Virus record (IMG/VR): IMGVR_UViG_3300023184_000026
Coordinates: 186,001 to 250,000 of that record
Direction: 5' to 3' (one strand)
Length of the DNA stretch: 64,000 nt
Made by a program: the position numbers and the translations under genes. The notes beneath the pieces are model-generated. The model searched no databases. It had not been told where the DNA came from and saw only the letters and a list, made by a program, of their open reading frames with translations. Positions 2,723 through 22,855 of the stretch are shown here, one piece after another; position 1 is the stretch's first letter; each line of letters opens with the position of its first letter.

Positions 2723-3385
2723 TCATTTCACAAACCTGCCATCTTTTCCACGGGGACATTTACTGGTTAGTCCTCTCCACCATCCAGTCGGAATTTCTTT
2801 TGATTTTTCGTATTTTTTATTAGAAATTCCATCTGTTATCCAACAGCTTCCTAATAGCCACGTGCGAGTTTTTTCTATACTTTCAGCCGACATTGTTTTA
2901 CCCAAATGCATTTTTCTATGATGTTCCTTACGTTCTTCGCTCCATATGGTGCCAGATGCATACGTGTTACCAATCAGTGAATTGGATATTTTATTTCTTG
3001 ATTTGATTGTATGATATCGCCCCTCCATCGGGCCGTTGGCTGGAATTGCTATGTTATACCCTCTCACTATTGAATTGTAAAATTCAACCCAGTGAATTTC
3101 TTTTGAAGTTAAAAGTTCTTTTATTGGCTCACACTCTTCCAAAATTACTTTATCAAAATTATCATATCCATACTTCTTCAAAGCATTATATAATTTTGTC
3201 TGTGCCTTGCACTCATGACGTTTGTATCTTCCCCATCTTGTATAAATATTATCGGCACTTTGTCCGATATACCATTTTCCGTTAGTTTTGTTTCTTAGAC
3301 CGTAGATACCGCAACATTTGGCGTTTGAGGATTTTTTCTTTATTTCGTTCGTAGTATCGTTTTGATTTTGTTCGGTTGTTTGCAT
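2723..3385 (-). CDS. GIY-YIG homing endonuclease with NUMOD3-like repeats
   Basis: GIYGLRNKTNGKWYIGQS, LYNALKKYGYDNF, GYN; C-terminal basic helical repeats and WITDG; start uncertain (nearest in-frame ATG 3385). Confidence 0.9.
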   Translation of the reverse strand: MQTTEQNQNDTTNEIKKKSSNAKCCGIYGLRNKTNGKWYIGQSADNIYTRWGRYKRHECKAQTKLYNALKKYGYDNFDKVILEECEPIKELLTSKEIHWVEFYNSIVRGYNIAIPANGPMEGRYHTIKSRNKISNSLIGNTYASGTIWSEERKEHHRKMHLGKTMSAESIEKTRTWLLGSCWITDGISNKKYEKSKEIPTGWWRGLTSKCPRGKDGRFVK

Positions 3386-3425
3386 CAATTTCTTCTTTCG
3401 TAGTGTATATTTTTTTTCTTCCCAT
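3282..3425 (-). CDS. 47-aa basic protein overlapping the GIY-YIG 5' end in another frame
   Basis: MGRKKIYTTKEEIDANNRTKSKRYYERNKEKILKRQMLRYLRSKKQN; directly after TATTTATTGAT; paralogue at 22530-22703. Confidence 0.7.
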   Translation of the reverse strand: MGRKKIYTTKEEIDANNRTKSKRYYERNKEKILKRQMLRYLRSKKQN

Positions 3426-3524
3426 ATCAATAAATATAGAGGTGAGAGAATAAAAGTGAGAGAAATCGTCATTATTTTTCGTTTTTTTCTGGACTTTTTA
3501 TAAAAACCGTTCATAGTTCTATTC

Positions 3525-4931
3525 ATGACCATTGATACCACGCAATTGATCGGCCCGCAGCCCGACCATGTAAAACGCCTCGTTGATTCTATTTACATCA
3601 ACGGGTTCGCTCTTGACATGAGCGAGACTGGGACTGGTAAGAGTTATTGTGCGGCGGCAGTTGCGAGGGAACTGGGTTGCGATGCCACTCGTCCGCTGGT
3701 GCTCATTGCACCAAAACCGATTTTACCACAATGGGCCAAGATCTTGTCCAGCTTCAATCTCAAGCCATATGTTGCCATCAACTATGAAAAGCTTGGGCGT
3801 GGCAACACCAAATATATGAAGTGGAAGAAACAGAAGTGCATATTGAAGCCATGGGTTGAAAATGCCGTCATGGATGCTCCGGAATTCAATTTGCCCAAGG
3901 ATGCATTGGTCATTCTGGACGAAGGACACAAATGCAAAGGCAATCATAGCACGAATTCATGGATGATGATCATGCTCAAGGAACAGGGCTATAAGGTGCT
4001 TGTGGCGTCTGCTACGCTTGCCACTACGCCAATGGAACTCAAGGCTGCTGGCTATTTGGCAGATCTGCACAGTCTGCATAACTTTGACCACTTTCTGCGT
4101 CAGCATGGTGCGGAGTGGGTTGGTCGGTTTGGTGCCATGTCGTGGGATGCTGCGTCTGTTGCTGCCAAACACAGCATGATGTTGCTCAATGAATATTTCT
4201 TTGACACTCGCAGATGCGCATCGCGTTTGACTGTGGACGACTTTGGTACATTGTTTCCAGAGTCTCATATTGTGGCAGAAGCTTATGACCTTGGAACTGC
4301 CACTGGTAAAATCAATGATATCTATGATGACATGGAAGCTGAAATTGCCAAGTTGGATGAACGTGCTGGCAATTATAGCGAACATATCTTTGCTATCATG
4401 ATGGAAGCTCGTCGTCGTTCTGAACTGTTGAAGGTTCCTTTCTTTGTTGATACCATGGAGGATCTTTATGATGAAGGCAAGAGTGTAGTATTGTTTGTGA
4501 ACTTTCAAGACACTGTTGATGCTATTGTAAAGCGTCTGGAGAAGATGAAGAAGTTCAAGGACACTATTGGATATATTGTTGGCGGGCAACATCATAAAAC
4601 TCGTCAGAAAGATATTGAAGACTTCAATGCTGACAAAAAACGCATCATGGTTGTGAACATCAAGGCTGGAGGCGTAGGCATCAGTCTGCATGACCTCAAC
4701 GGCAATCACGCACGTGCCAGCATCATCAGCCCCAACTTCAGTGCGTTTGAGCTGGTGCAGGCTTTGGGGCGTGTATGGCGTCAGGGTGGCAAGACCAAGT
4801 CGTTTCAGAATATTGTGTATGCAGCTGGCACAATTGAAGAAAAAGCTTGTCATCGCGTTCAGTTTAGAATGAACAACTTGAGCACGCTCAATGATGCTGA
4901 TTTGCGAGAAGGCATCAAAATGTTTGGTTAA
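3525..4931 (+). CDS. superfamily 2 (SNF2-like) helicase/ATPase
   Basis: Walker A ETGTGKS, DEGH box, SAT motif III, GGVGISL, QALGRVWRQG motif VI. Confidence 0.9.
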   Translation: MTIDTTQLIGPQPDHVKRLVDSIYINGFALDMSETGTGKSYCAAAVARELGCDATRPLVLIAPKPILPQWAKILSSFNLKPYVAINYEKLGRGNTKYMKWKKQKCILKPWVENAVMDAPEFNLPKDALVILDEGHKCKGNHSTNSWMMIMLKEQGYKVLVASATLATTPMELKAAGYLADLHSLHNFDHFLRQHGAEWVGRFGAMSWDAASVAAKHSMMLLNEYFFDTRRCASRLTVDDFGTLFPESHIVAEAYDLGTATGKINDIYDDMEAEIAKLDERAGNYSEHIFAIMMEARRRSELLKVPFFVDTMEDLYDEGKSVVLFVNFQDTVDAIVKRLEKMKKFKDTIGYIVGGQHHKTRQKDIEDFNADKKRIMVVNIKAGGVGISLHDLNGNHARASIISPNFSAFELVQALGRVWRQGGKTKSFQNIVYAAGTIEEKACHRVQFRMNNLSTLNDADLREGIKMFG

Positions 4932-9781: not shown

Positions 9782-10843
9782 CTATTGAAATCTACCATTG
9801 GGTGCTTTATTACACCCAATTGATTCTATGGATTTTGCTCGTCTGTAACTGTTGTTGGGAACTATTATTCCCATCAGCATGCATCTCTTTTTTAATCCAA
9901 CATCACTCAACCCAAATTGAGGACCAAGTTTTGATAAAGGAGTATTATTGACCATTTCTTGCAATTGTTCTTTTTCCGGCAGTTGAATTTTTCTGGATGC
10001 ATGGTTATGAATATTGGCACATTTTTTACAACGAATTGAACGTTGTGCAATATTTTTATCACAATCTTTACACTTTTTTTGTTCTTTTTTCTTGTTTATT
10101 GGTATGTATACATCATACTGAAAATTACTTACGGGTCTATGGTGAAACTGGATATCATCTCGTGCTTCTACCGCGAAGTTCTCAATTCGAATTTGAGTAG
10201 ACCCACCACTCTTCCAAACATCATAATCAAAATCATTGAGTAGTGGTACATTGACAATTGTGTCCAGAAGCGAAGAAATATATTCGCTTTTGAAGCATAA
10301 TGAATAATGTATTTCTATTATTTTCCACCCAGCAGCAGTAATCAAATCATGTTTTTCTTGATAATATGGTTTTAATTTTCCTATAGCGTCATAGTGCTGA
10401 TTTCCATTAATTTCTAAACATACCATTTTTTCCGGAAATGCAATATCCACAGCAAATGATCTATCTATTAATGGGGTAAATTCTGGCAAAAATTTTATAT
10501 TCTTTGACAAAATAAACTCTTTTAGTTTCTCACACGGAACTGATTTAAACTTTGAATGACGTTTCCAAACGTGCTTATCTGGATTTTCTTTTAGCCACAC
10601 TTTTCTTTTGTCAGATATTATCTTCTTGGCTTCTGATGTATGCTTACGAAAACCTCCACAATCTTTACAATAGAGTGAACGTGGCTTGGCATCTTTATCG
10701 CATTTTTCACATTTTTTAACTTTTCTTCGTTTTCTGCTTGGATTTTTTTCACACCATCTAATGTGATTTGCTTTTTTGTGGGGAGATAAGTCAAATTCTA
10801 AATCACAGTGTTGACAGGTCCATTTACTCGGTGTATTTTCCAT
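9782..10843 (-). CDS. putative homing endonuclease: Zn fingers plus DUF559/Vsr-like PD-(D/E)XK domain
   Basis: CQHC...HIRWC, CEKC/CKDC; FAVDIAFPEKMVCLEINGNQHY...GWKIIEIH; C-terminal CKDC...CKKC and HTH-like tail. Confidence 0.8.
   Translation of the reverse strand: MENTPSKWTCQHCDLEFDLSPHKKANHIRWCEKNPSRKRRKVKKCEKCDKDAKPRSLYCKDCGGFRKHTSEAKKIISDKRKVWLKENPDKHVWKRHSKFKSVPCEKLKEFILSKNIKFLPEFTPLIDRSFAVDIAFPEKMVCLEINGNQHYDAIGKLKPYYQEKHDLITAAGWKIIEIHYSLCFKSEYISSLLDTIVNVPLLNDFDYDVWKSGGSTQIRIENFAVEARDDIQFHHRPVSNFQYDVYIPINKKKEQKKCKDCDKNIAQRSIRCKKCANIHNHASRKIQLPEKEQLQEMVNNTPLSKLGPQFGLSDVGLKKRCMLMGIIVPNNSYRRAKSIESIGCNKAPNGRFQ
10133..10208 (+). tRNA. tRNA-Arg(TCT), nested antisense inside the nuclease ORF
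   Basis: GGGTCTA/TAGACCC, D stem GTGA/TCAT, TCGTG-CTTCTAC-CGCGA, CTCAA-TTCGAAT-TTGAG, ACCA; 76 nt. Confidence 0.9.
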
Positions 10844-10975
10844 ATCAATATATATCCGAAATCAAACCCAAAACGCAACATTATTTAAAAATTTTATTTT
10901 CATAGTTCAAGTCACCAATTTTTGTTTGACTTTCATAAAAACTCCGCTAGAGTAAAGTGAATGTTCTTTTTTACT

Positions 10976-11047
10976 CCTCCTATAGCTCAACGGTAGAGCG
11001 AAGAACTCATAATTCTTGGGTTACAGGTTCGAATCCTGTTGGGAGGA
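10976..11047 (+). tRNA. tRNA with CAT anticodon (Met or lysidine-Ile2); no encoded CCA
   Basis: CCTCCTA/TGGGAGG, AAGAA-CTCATAA-TTCTT, GGTTCGAATCC. Confidence 0.88.
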
Positions 11048-11095
11048 CTATTTTGTTCTTTACTTTTTATAAAAATCTGCTAGAATATCTAAACA

Positions 11096-11311
11096 ATGAA
11101 AAATATCTCATTTCGCTCTCTTGTTATTGATTTGCTTGATTCGCCTGATGGCATTCCAGAACCTACTTATGTAAAGTTGGTTGAATTTGCTGAAACAAAC
11201 CATCCAGATACATATGCTGACATTTGGGATGCCACAGAAGGTGGTGATGGGAACAATGGTTATTGTGTGTATCTTGATGAAGATACTGCACAAGAATTGC
11301 GCAAAAAGTAA
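11096..11311 (+). CDS. hypothetical early protein
   Basis: Own promoter at ~11060. Confidence 0.7.
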   Translation: MKNISFRSLVIDLLDSPDGIPEPTYVKLVEFAETNHPDTYADIWDATEGGDGNNGYCVYLDEDTAQELRKK

Positions 11312-11320
11312 TTTACACGT

Positions 11321-11394
11321 GGGAGGTTAGTTTAATGGTAAAACTGGTGCTTTATAGGCGCTTGTTGGGGGTTCGAATCCCTCACCTCCTACCA
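11321..11394 (+). tRNA. tRNA-Ile(TAT)
   Basis: GGGAGGT/ACCTCCT, GGTGC-TTTATAG-GCGCT, GGTTCGAATCC, ACCA. Confidence 0.85.
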
Positions 11395-11463
11395 CTTTTT
11401 TATTGACATTTATAAAAACTCTGCTAGAGTAGATAAAGTTAAGTAGAGGTTCTTTCATATTTT

Positions 11464-11538
11464 GGTCTTGTAGCTCAATGGTAGAGCAGTTGACTTTTAA
11501 TCAATTGGTTGTGGGTTCAAATCCCACCGAGACCACCA
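11464..11538 (+). tRNA. tRNA-Lys(TTT)
   Basis: GGTCTTG/CGAGACC, GTTGA-CTTTTAA-TCAAT, GGTTCAAATCC, ACCA. Confidence 0.93.
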
Positions 11539-11541
11539 TTT

Positions 11542-11638
11542 TCAAGTAGATACCCGTTTAATGAAAATAATCGCCCAATATGTCTGAGGCTGATTACTAC
11601 GGTGCGGAAATTGACAAATACACCGAACATCTACTTGA
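11542..11638 (+). ncRNA. putative closed-stem structured RNA
   Basis: Terminal TCAAGTAGAT/ATCTACTTGA perfect 10-bp stem; inner AATCGCC/GGCTGATT and CGGTG/CACCG stems. Confidence 0.5.
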
Positions 11639-11823
11639 TTCAATTTATCCTTACTCAAAGAAGGAGGTAACTTACTCTTTGAAGGAGGATATCAGCGATG
11701 AACCCAAAAACAAGGAGGGAGTGGGCTCGGTTCCCATAATAGTGCGTGAAAGCTCGCACCATCGCACAATTTTAGTTTGACAAAATATAAAATACGTTCA
11801 TAGTTATGTATGTTCTTTTTCAG

Positions 11824-11909
11824 GCCAACTTCGCATAATCTGGCATTGCAGCACTTTTGTAAAGTGCCGTCGAAAGACATTATCGGTTCAAATCCGTTAG
11901 TTGGCTCCA
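11824..11909 (+). tRNA. tRNA-Thr(TGT) with long variable arm
   Basis: GCCAACT/AGTTGGC, GCACT-TTTGTAA-AGTGC, variable arm GTC-GAAA-GAC, GGTTCAAATCC, TCCA. Confidence 0.8.
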
Positions 11910-11963
11910 CTTTATTTATCTCATATCGCGATACTTATGTTTGTTCTTTTTACATTTTTATTT

Positions 11964-12076
11964 GAGGCGGCGGCGTGGAAGGACACGCAGCCTTTCGAGT
12001 CTATGACAACAAGAGACCCCGCTAAGTTGCGGTTAATTGGCGTTGTCAGTTGGTATCAATTCCAACCCGTCCTCTA
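11964..12076 (+). ncRNA. tRNA-like RNA with D and T arms but an expanded central region
   Basis: GAGGCGG/CCGTCCTC, GCGT-GGAAGGAC-ACGC, GTTGG-TATCAATT-CCAAC; centre TGACAAC/GTTGTCA and CCGC-TAAGTT-GCGG. Confidence 0.55.
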
Positions 12077-12081
12077 TTTTT

Positions 12082-12156
12082 GGCCCTATAGTTTATCGGT
12101 TAGAACATTCGGTTTTCATCCGGAAGGGCGGGATTCGATTTCCCGTAGGGCTACCA
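12082..12156 (+). tRNA. tRNA-Glu(TTC)
   Basis: GGCCCTA/TAGGGCT, TTCGG-TTTTCAT-CCGGA, CGGGA-TTCGATT-TCCCG, ACCA. Confidence 0.9.
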
Positions 12157-21620: not shown

Positions 21621-21974
21621 ATGAACTCTATCTTTTCTCCTGATCTGGTAAACAAGCCCACGGTGGTATATGGTCCACAGGTTGGCGACATATTGGTCAG
21701 CATATCTGGCTATGAGGCCAGCATTGCTAGTTGGGCCAAGGTTGTGGGTGTGACTGGCAAGAGCGTCAAGATTGTGCGCTTGCCCGCCGACAACAAATAC
21801 ACTGGCGGCGGTGGCATGGAATGGATCAGCACGCCTGCCACGGACCGCATCAAGGGCGAGACCGAAACGAAACGTTTTACTGCTGATGGCGACGGCTATA
21901 GGGTCAAGAACAACAGCTACAGCAACTATTATGTTTGGAGTGGCAAGCCAATTGAGTGCTACAACTGGCATTGA
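21621..21974 (+). CDS. hypothetical early protein
   Basis: VGDILVSISGYE...VVGVTGKSV; promoter 21586. Confidence 0.75.
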   Translation: MNSIFSPDLVNKPTVVYGPQVGDILVSISGYEASIASWAKVVGVTGKSVKIVRLPADNKYTGGGGMEWISTPATDRIKGETETKRFTADGDGYRVKNNSYSNYYVWSGKPIECYNWH

Positions 21975-22663
21975 TCTTTCAAGAAATGGCGTTTCATTGC
22001 CTCTGAGAGAGCAACCCTGTTGCTCTCATCAGAGTAATGTTTGAACAGTGCGTCGGATATTTTCTTGTTGCGTTCCTTACTGAATGTGCGACCTTTCATC
22101 CTTTCTGACATTTTTAGTCTTTCTTCTTCGGCAATGACCCTTCCACATTTTTTATTCTGCTCAGGGGTTCTTCGCTTCCGTGCATCGCTTAGTGCTTTTC
22201 TGTGAGCATCACTAAATTTTTTTCCTTTTTTTGCCGCACTTATATTTTTTCGATGTTCCGGACTGTTAGTGGCTCCTGATCTAAGGTCTCCACCATAACC
22301 GCCATCCGTTAGATTATATCCATTGTTCTTTGAGTCATAATACTTTATCCACACTATTTCTTTATTGCTGAGTTCATCTTTGTCGCATTCTTCCAGTATT
22401 ACTTTGTTGAAATTGTTTATTCCATATTTTTTGAGGGCTCGATAGATTTTAGGCTGAGTTTTACAACTTACATTATCGTATGCAGTTTTCCACCTATCGT
22501 GGATATCAACACTCAGTCCGATATACCATTTATGTGGTTTGAGTTTGTTCTGTAGTCCGTATATTCCTATCTTTTTTGACATGGTATCGGTTACGAGCAT
22601 TTTCTCTTTCTCTGTTGACATTTTTCCAGTAACTTCGCATTCTGTAAATTCTGTTGAGTTCAT
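21959..22663 (-). CDS. GIY-YIG homing endonuclease with NUMOD3-like repeats
   Basis: GIYGLQNK...WYIGLS, RALKKYG, GYNLTDGG, SPEHRKNISAAKKG; likely start ATG 22582 (MSKKIGIY). Confidence 0.9.
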   Translation of the reverse strand: MNSTEFTECEVTGKMSTEKEKMLVTDTMSKKIGIYGLQNKLKPHKWYIGLSVDIHDRWKTAYDNVSCKTQPKIYRALKKYGINNFNKVILEECDKDELSNKEIVWIKYYDSKNNGYNLTDGGYGGDLRSGATNSPEHRKNISAAKKGKKFSDAHRKALSDARKRRTPEQNKKCGRVIAEEERLKMSERMKGRTFSKERNKKISDALFKHYSDESNRVALSEAMKRHFLKDQCQL

Positions 22664-22703
22664 CGAGGTGTTCCTTTGTTCGGTTTAGTTTTTTTCTTCC
22701 CAT
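22530..22703 (-). CDS. 57-aa basic protein overlapping the GIY-YIG 5' end in another frame
   Basis: MGRKKLNRTKEHLDELNRIYRMRSYWKNVNRERENARNRYHVKK...; after TATTTATTGAT. Confidence 0.7.
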   Translation of the reverse strand: MGRKKLNRTKEHLDELNRIYRMRSYWKNVNRERENARNRYHVKKDRNIRTTEQTQTT

Positions 22704-22775
22704 ATCAATAAATAGTATTTACTTACAAAAAACCTTACAAAATTAGTTTTTATTTTAGGTTGAGTGTTCATAGTT

Positions 22776-22810: not shown

Positions 22811-22855
22811 ACTTTGCCGCTTGACTTTTATAATAAATAAATCATTATCTTAAAT

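Follow-up and report, generated by a model that had tools for sequence, protein, structure and literature searches.

Organisation of the two cassettes

The window analysed here, a 64,000-nucleotide stretch corresponding to bases 186001-250000 of the 297,258-base genome of an uncultivated lake-water phage (37% G+C), carries two insertions on its minus strand in which the gene for a GIY-YIG nuclease overlaps, out of frame, a short ORF for a small basic peptide. The first cassette (2724-3518, upper boundary approximate) is a mobile insertion lying between a gene that ends at 2680 and a helicase gene that starts at 3525. Its small ORF (3282-3425, minus strand, stop included) runs from an ATG at 3425 to a TAA at 3284-3282 and encodes a 47-residue peptide with a pI of 10.5 that begins with MGRKK, exactly as had been read in the original prediction. 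The nuclease ORF (2723-3385, minus strand) lies in the +1 frame and encodes 220 amino acids counted from its first internal ATG, which is base 40 of the small ORF. The nuclease frame was said to be open throughout, and indeed no stop codon interrupts it from 3592 to its own stop at 2723; it also contains an alternative TTG start at 3430-3428.

The second cassette (21966-22751, minus strand) is likewise a mobile insertion, whose boundaries are given by empty-site variants. Its small ORF (22530-22703, minus strand) extends from an ATG at 22703 to a TAA at 22532-22530 and encodes a 57-residue basic peptide (pI 11.0) starting with MGRKKLNRTKE, while its nuclease ORF (21959-22663, minus strand) occupies the +1 frame and encodes 234 amino acids from an ATG that is again base 40 of the small ORF; the recurrence of layout and frame offset noted earlier at 22530-22703 was thus correctly identified. 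The two peptides share 14 of 28 N-terminal residues and the two nuclease domains are 55% identical. A 26-base start motif, in which the ATG stands between an AT-rich box and an A-rich run (TATTTATTGAT followed by ATGGGAAGAAAAAAA), is identical at 3411-3436 and 22689-22714 on the minus strand, and its 25-base core has two exact matches, compared to none in 100 shuffles. The A run measures eight bases in copy 1 and seven in copy 2, where a TAA in the +1 frame (22685-22687, minus strand) follows it directly. Upstream of each ATG is a tandem direct repeat: two units of TTCTCTCAC (3456-3464 and 3442-3450, spanning 3442-3464, minus strand), 16 bases 5' of the ATG in copy 1, which form a candidate operator, and two units of TTTTGTAAG (22734-22742 and 22722-22730, spanning 22722-22742, minus strand), 18 bases 5' of the ATG in copy 2 and just within the cassette boundary. 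A whole-genome profile search located a third module outside the window (G000, C1; 138537-138701, plus strand). Its peptide has 54 residues and begins with MGRK, its repeats are a GTAAG pair, and its +1 ATG, at base 40, leads into a GIY-YIG body, the arrangement seen in copies 1 and 2. No module accompanies the fourth GIY-YIG gene (near 282174), whose start is plain.

Judging by their motifs, the nucleases are ordinary I-TevI-like members of the GIY-YIG family. Copy 1 matches PF01541 with an E-value of 2.3e-9 and copy 2 with an E-value of 5.1e-4 (20.7 bits, just below the cut-off of 22.6), and they score 77 and 90 bits, respectively, against TIGR01453 (cut-off 56). The GIY and YIG motifs and the catalytic Arg, Glu and Asn are present, and G33, I34, Y35, Y47, G49, R57, E102 and N117 are invariant in 31 of 31 aligned nucleases. 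In the structural model of nuclease 2, the catalytic domain (residues 33-115) is predicted with a pLDDT of 93-97 and is preceded by a disordered leader (residues 1-30, pLDDT 45-61). A leader predicted to be disordered is what would be expected of the younger frame in an overprinted pair.

The genome has few Shine-Dalgarno signals: the upstream regions of its long ORFs are A/T-rich and AGGAG precedes only 2 of the 269 in a genome scan. Across the whole genome, T is preferred at position -1 ahead of long ORFs and Shine-Dalgarno motifs are nearly absent, so that an ATG in an AT-rich context is an ordinary start in this phage. These features suggest a host with Shine-Dalgarno-independent initiation, for example a member of the Bacteroidota. 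A scan for sigma-70 promoters returned fewer matches than in shuffles and was left unused, and megablast of the cassette region against cultured phages gave no match. A recurrent motif, TTTTTATAAAAAGTCAAG, is found in the window at 22815-22832 and 3482-3500 (minus strand) and some 20 times elsewhere in the genome, usually on the minus strand and ahead of genes, and resembles a phage-specific promoter or regulatory site; on other contigs, an [AT]GTCAA[GC] core is enriched 5' of cassettes (29/64 loci vs 19/374 background windows). The window also contains a third endonuclease-like gene (9782-10843, minus strand; 353 amino acids, with a zinc finger and a Vsr/DUF559-like core), which has a near-identical start signal, TATATATTGATATG, yet no MGRKK ORF. 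A tRNA-Arg(tct) gene was detected by ARAGORN within it on the opposite strand (10133-10208), followed by five more tRNAs (Met, Ile-tat, Lys, Thr and Glu), the tRNA span extending over 10133-12156.

Conservation of the small protein and of the +1 frame

A profile built from a 12-sequence peptide alignment retrieved loci carrying the peptide from viral contigs (20), metagenomes (76) and a genome collection (2 MAG contigs), which were reduced to 66 non-redundant loci with less than 85% peptide identity. Since the genome-collection scan gave only these two MAG contigs, the module is essentially phage-borne. A long downstream ORF in the +1 frame relative to the MGRKK ORF is present in 65 of the 66 loci, although these share descent and such statistics overstate their independence. 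The original prediction held chance to be unlikely because the offset recurs in the second copy; two copies with the same offset would occur by chance about one time in two, and it is the survey that bears the claim out. In sequence terms the layout is far beyond chance and is a shared design. Among the 54 downstream ORFs scanned for families, 32 matched GIY-YIG, 22 NUMOD3 and 2 HNH, and the remainder had no family. The earlier observation that the small ORF of copy 1 stops only after the GIY codons also proved to be general across the surveyed loci, because the R-N-I-Q-N-N-Q tail of many peptides is what frame 0 yields from the bases that encode the nuclease motif G-I-Y-K-I-I-N. We found no description of this layout in the literature searched.

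The small ORF itself is conserved. A two-peptide profile run against 1.84 billion representative proteins matched 92 clusters at E < 1e-3, nearly all of them 44-60 residues long and aligned from residue 1, with the family consensus MGRKKLNRT-EEL-E-NR----RYY--N--------L-RYY--K. In 62 aligned loci the frame-0 codon positions have entropies of 1.05, 0.81 and 1.30, and the invariant residues G2, R3, K4, Y25 and Y40 show synonymous variation. The entropy pattern, together with the synonymous changes, is a signature of purifying selection on frame 0; by this measure the small ORF is a genuine gene, under selection for its protein product and physically linked to the gene for the nuclease. AlphaFold2, supplied with a 53-sequence alignment, predicts a helical hairpin (mean pLDDT 94.8) in which residues 1-9 form an extended arm and residues 10-27 and 29-46 two helices of 18 residues each.

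Annotation has passed this gene over. Its homologues are labelled 'hypothetical protein' in their sources, there is no family for the peptide in Pfam or NCBIfam and no informative one in PHROG, and an Atlas search returned solely clusters of unnamed small proteins. A word-index protein search with peptide 1 gave no candidate, a tblastn search of the peptides against cultured phages gave only hits with E = 2-6 to proteins with a similar repeated motif, and Foldseek found no match to the peptide model in the PDB at E <= 0.001. Membership of the ribbon-helix-helix or AT-hook families thus has no counterpart by sequence or fold in Pfam, NCBIfam or the PDB; the modelled arm and two helices are compatible with such a binder and are non-diagnostic. 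An R-x-Y-Y-x-x-N-x-E-like motif resembling that of the peptide is repeated within phage zinc-finger/HNH-type proteins, and the peptide domain forms the in-frame N-terminus of one HNH protein, P0049 (5 contigs). In Agaricales fungi (Amanita, Coprinellus, Pleurotus and others), hypothetical proteins present in multiple copies also begin with MGRP-LY-T-EE---ANRAKSKRYYERNK, which is sometimes repeated (P0016, P0042, P0050, P0068, P0071, P0075 and P0082; no annotated function). The peptide, which matches no DNA-binding family, is probably a DNA-binding regulator, and it is a reasonable candidate for binding the direct repeats and regulating the cassette because it is strongly basic (pI 10.5-11) and has two helices and an arm like that of minor-groove binders.

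Selection on the second frame was evaluated with a null model in which each peptide was resampled with synonymous codons, using the codon usage of the non-overlapping nuclease bodies. Between base 40 and the end of the overlap, 56 of 61 loci have no stop codon in the +1 frame, compared to 4.3 expected, and this avoidance of stops implies that translation of the +1 frame across the overlap is selected. Further upstream the frame is frequently closed: in 28 of the 61 loci it is interrupted between the start and base 19-40 or later, with openness beginning at base 19, 40, 58, 67, 112 or 139, depending on the locus. An internal +1 ATG with an open path to the nuclease is present in 28 of 28 of these closed loci (10.1 expected), bearing in mind that the commonest position, base 40, arises from the D/N-E codons of the peptide and that part of its conservation could reflect frame 0. 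Every surveyed locus has its own +1 ATG 5' of the nuclease body, at base 28, 31, 40, 73, 121 or 142 according to the subfamily and usually at base 28-40 in the closed loci.

A portable 5' module on mobile cassettes

The surveyed loci fall into two promoter geometries. In about half of them (among these copy 2 and, judging from the layout of its promoter, copy 1), a TATTTAT- box lies 11-15 bases before the MGRKK ATG and the nuclease ATG is at base 28-40. In the other half the AT-rich box is about 47-64 bases before the MGRKK ATG. The order of the start codons is swapped in 33 loci, with a +1 ATG 17-59 bases 5' of the MGRKK ATG; in many of these, the +1 ATG that opens the nuclease ORF comes a few bases after the AT-rich box, and the MGRKK ATG is inside that ORF. 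In both sub-types, two start codons in different frames thus lie within about 40 bases of each other, with their order reversed between the sub-types, and in about half of all loci the small ORF is wholly contained in the nuclease ORF.

Pairwise comparison of the loci revealed that this 5' region has been exchanged between nucleases. The module of L072, which precedes a zinc-finger/NUMOD3 body, is 87-100% identical to that of L050, which precedes a GIY-YIG body, from -31 to +118, and identity falls to about 35% beyond; comparable mosaic breaks occur in other pairs. The break coincides with the end of the peptide domain and the beginning of the nuclease body, and the module must therefore supply the upstream signals, the small gene, and the start codon and leader of the nuclease, which accounts for the constant +1 offset. 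On this mosaic pattern, the promoter region, small ORF and nuclease start are a portable 5' module that sits ahead of GIY-YIG, NUMOD3/zinc-finger and HNH bodies. Tandem direct repeats of 7-12 bases at about -15 to -45 are a feature of many cassettes, including most of those with the box near the MGRKK ATG. The units agree within a cassette and vary between cassettes (TTCTCTCAC in copy 1, TTTTGTAAG in copy 2 and the GTAAG pair in copy 3), and the repeat type goes with the subfamily of the peptide rather than with the type of nuclease, TTCTAATG for example being found with both GIY-YIG and zinc-finger bodies. The match between repeat and peptide could result from simple linkage, both being less than 100 bases apart.

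Both copies in the window show the presence/absence variation of mobile, free-standing cassettes. For cassette 2, empty-site contigs from three independent lake-metagenome runs (X8, X11 and X14) skip from 21965/6 to 22752, the 785-786 missing bases being replaced by 9-10 others, and run X14 contains both forms of the site. The cassette begins 48 bases before the ATG, just outside the direct-repeat pair. For cassette 1, one contig (X18, from the RNA library of a single run) continues from 2600-2723 through 6 bases into a helicase-like start. These empty-site contigs show that both cassettes are polymorphic insertions in natural populations. At its end (21959-21966), cassette 2 overlaps the last codons of a plus-strand ORF (21621-21974), and since the empty-site variants have 9-10 different bases here, the insertion has rewritten the C-terminus of that gene. 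A second indel polymorphism lies just 5' of cassette 2 and adjoins a G+C-rich hairpin, 16 bases at 22811-22828 of the window being swapped for 360 others in an X14 contig.

Proposed expression of the two frames and comparison with known systems

Taken together, these data establish the two-frame architecture, selection on both frames, modular exchange and the mobility of the cassettes. The explanation we favour, with a probability of roughly 0.6, is that these are free-standing homing-endonuclease cassettes with a portable dual-coding 5' module containing the starts of two separately initiated, overlapping genes. The first ~170 bases of each locus would constitute the module, with its direct repeats, AT-rich box and two nearby starts in different frames. 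Frame 0 would encode a conserved protein of 45-60 residues, made up of the MGRKK arm and two 18-residue helices, and the +1 frame would provide a start codon and a disordered leader of about 30 residues, the nuclease body following on exactly from the end of the peptide domain. Both proteins would be made from one transcript by separate initiation, and ribosomes translating the small ORF would cross the nuclease ATG, which is expected to keep nuclease output low. A search for RNA runs containing the cassettes listed none. The peptide may bind DNA, most likely the direct repeats of its own cassette, and thereby regulate the cassette, and the order of the two ATGs may set the ratio of the products. 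More speculatively, the module might be a portable control unit for selfish nucleases, in which the peptide recognises the co-varying repeats of its own promoter, and perhaps the target site, and the ATG order sets the peptide-to-nuclease ratio, making this a two-part homing endonuclease system created by overprinting; we put this forward as a tentative extension only. The idea of a regulator or inhibitor peptide translationally coupled to the nuclease survives in so far as a separate peptide is encoded by the same cassette; classical coupling by termination and reinitiation fits poorly, because the small ORF stops about 100 bases 3' of the nuclease ATG.

The other mechanism originally suggested, a +1 shift at the A7-8 run, did not withstand closer inspection. 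Some observations are in keeping with a programmed +1 ribosomal frameshift or transcriptional slippage that would fuse the MGRKK start to the nuclease at a low set level: A6-A8 runs exist, the overlap stays readable in the +1 frame, bodies of unrelated nuclease types all start in +1 exactly at the end of the peptide domain, and the peptide domain is naturally in frame at the N-terminus of P0049. However, slippage on the A run would lead directly into the +1 TAA at 22687-22685 in copy 2, as it would into a +1 stop in many other loci, and the position from which the frame is open varies; we looked for a conserved shift site among the loci and saw none. A frameshift would have no need of a start codon in the second frame, yet this is retained in all 28 loci closed upstream and at base 40 in copies 1 and 2, and in three loci (L061, L109 and L022) the +1 frame opens only at base 112-139, 3-9 bases ahead of its ATG. 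In copy 1, moreover, the conserved R-Y-L of the peptide (RY(Y/L) in the family) and the G-I-Y of the nuclease are written in the same bases, and no fusion could therefore retain both. The sole GIY-YIG in-frame fusion among the matches (P0039 / L114), considered as a natural example, comes from a contig that has 2 additional bases near base 100 and whose 3' end is broken, features that suggest error or decay. With both frames open beyond expectation and a start codon in each, as in an overprinted pair, two separately initiated proteins without a frameshift are most likely, and we consider a frameshift improbable. Genuine decay or mis-assembly, whereby an ancestral in-frame fusion was broken by a homopolymer indel, could draw on the A-rich homopolymers and the in-frame relative P0049, but is hardly credible given the avoidance of stops in the +1 frame, the intact catalytic residues of all 31 aligned nucleases and the retention of the layout in 65 of 66 diverged loci. 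An assembly artefact was also considered: contigs from independent studies (X5 and X8) match both regions and show no indel in either ORF, which excludes homopolymer mis-assembly.

The remaining alternatives concern the role of the small ORF. The peptide might be a subunit or an inhibitor of the nuclease, binding to the enzyme or to its leader and aiding target recognition or holding the enzyme inactive in the manner of an antitoxin; peptide and nuclease are always co-encoded, the order of small basic protein and nuclease recalls toxin-antitoxin pairs, and the peptide resembles the repeated motif of phage HNH-type proteins. We think this unlikely, but worth keeping in mind: a single peptide subfamily precedes unrelated nuclease bodies, making a specific contact with the catalytic domain unlikely, and L022, L061 and L109 have almost no leader. 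Homing endonucleases are known for being held at low expression. The small ORF could accordingly be a purely regulatory upstream overlapping ORF, where the act of translation throttles nuclease initiation and the peptide has no function, and the position of the nuclease ATG within the small ORF has the right geometry for this. We nevertheless give this explanation little credence in view of the conservation at the amino-acid level with synonymous change, the confidently predicted fold and the homologous motifs in non-overlapping proteins, including the fungal ones. Separate initiation of a selected small protein and a nuclease remains our preferred explanation.

Free-standing homing endonucleases are regarded as single-gene parasites. 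The discovery of a second, hidden gene over the nuclease start in a large group of them, from freshwater and peat phages, is of consequence for annotation: in roughly half of the loci the nuclease ORF engulfs the small ORF, which calls for caution in gene calling, and the small gene is missed or left unnamed, no function being assigned to it in Pfam, NCBIfam or PHROG. Should the small protein regulate or guide the nuclease, this would change the view of how these elements limit their toxicity and spread, and would provide a natural case of two proteins made via alternative starts in hosts without Shine-Dalgarno initiation.

The cassettes resemble phage GIY-YIG homing endonucleases of the I-TevI and Seg-like type (TIGR01453, PF01541, NUMOD3) in the positions of the GIY, YIG, Arg, Glu and Asn signature elements, in their variable C-terminal DNA-binding part and in their insertion between genes with their own upstream signals, present or absent among near-identical phages. 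They differ in that the first ~140 bases of the nuclease gene double as coding sequence for a conserved small protein read in another frame, and in that the nuclease start lies about 30 codons 5' of the domain, inside the small ORF; L005, the nearest relative of the plain type (50% identity), lacks such an ORF and has 4 residues ahead of GIY. I-TevI represses its own synthesis, the endonuclease binding an operator over its own promoter. The notion of a cassette limiting its own expression through a DNA site in the promoter would be analogous, except that here a direct-repeat pair is the candidate operator, and a small protein distinct from the nuclease is the candidate regulator. As in Type II toxin-antitoxin systems and ribbon-helix-helix or AT-hook regulators, a small basic protein comes first, a nuclease second and repeats lie in the promoter, and the N-terminal arm and two helices of the peptide recall ribbon-helix-helix and AT-hook binders; in contrast, the overlap is long and out of frame as opposed to 1-4 bases in Type II toxin-antitoxin pairs, and the peptide has no match to the ribbon-helix-helix or AT-hook families. 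The partly overlapping, +1-offset frames with an enzyme as the second product are reminiscent of the programmed +1 frameshifts of prfB and antizyme, whereas here the second frame has its own start everywhere, there is no fixed shift site and a +1 stop follows the proposed one. The two proteins encoded by the same bases in different frames can be compared with phiX174 B/A, E/D and K, lambda Rz/Rz1 and eukaryotic upstream overlapping ORFs, where one frame is likewise older and structured and the other disordered, with translational interference between the starts. Unlike in these pairs, the overlap is part of a portable module at the 5' end, which recombination places in front of unrelated nuclease bodies, and the order of the start codons swaps between sub-types; what is new is a conserved, unannotated small gene that is overprinted on the 5' ends of nuclease genes and exchanged as a module.
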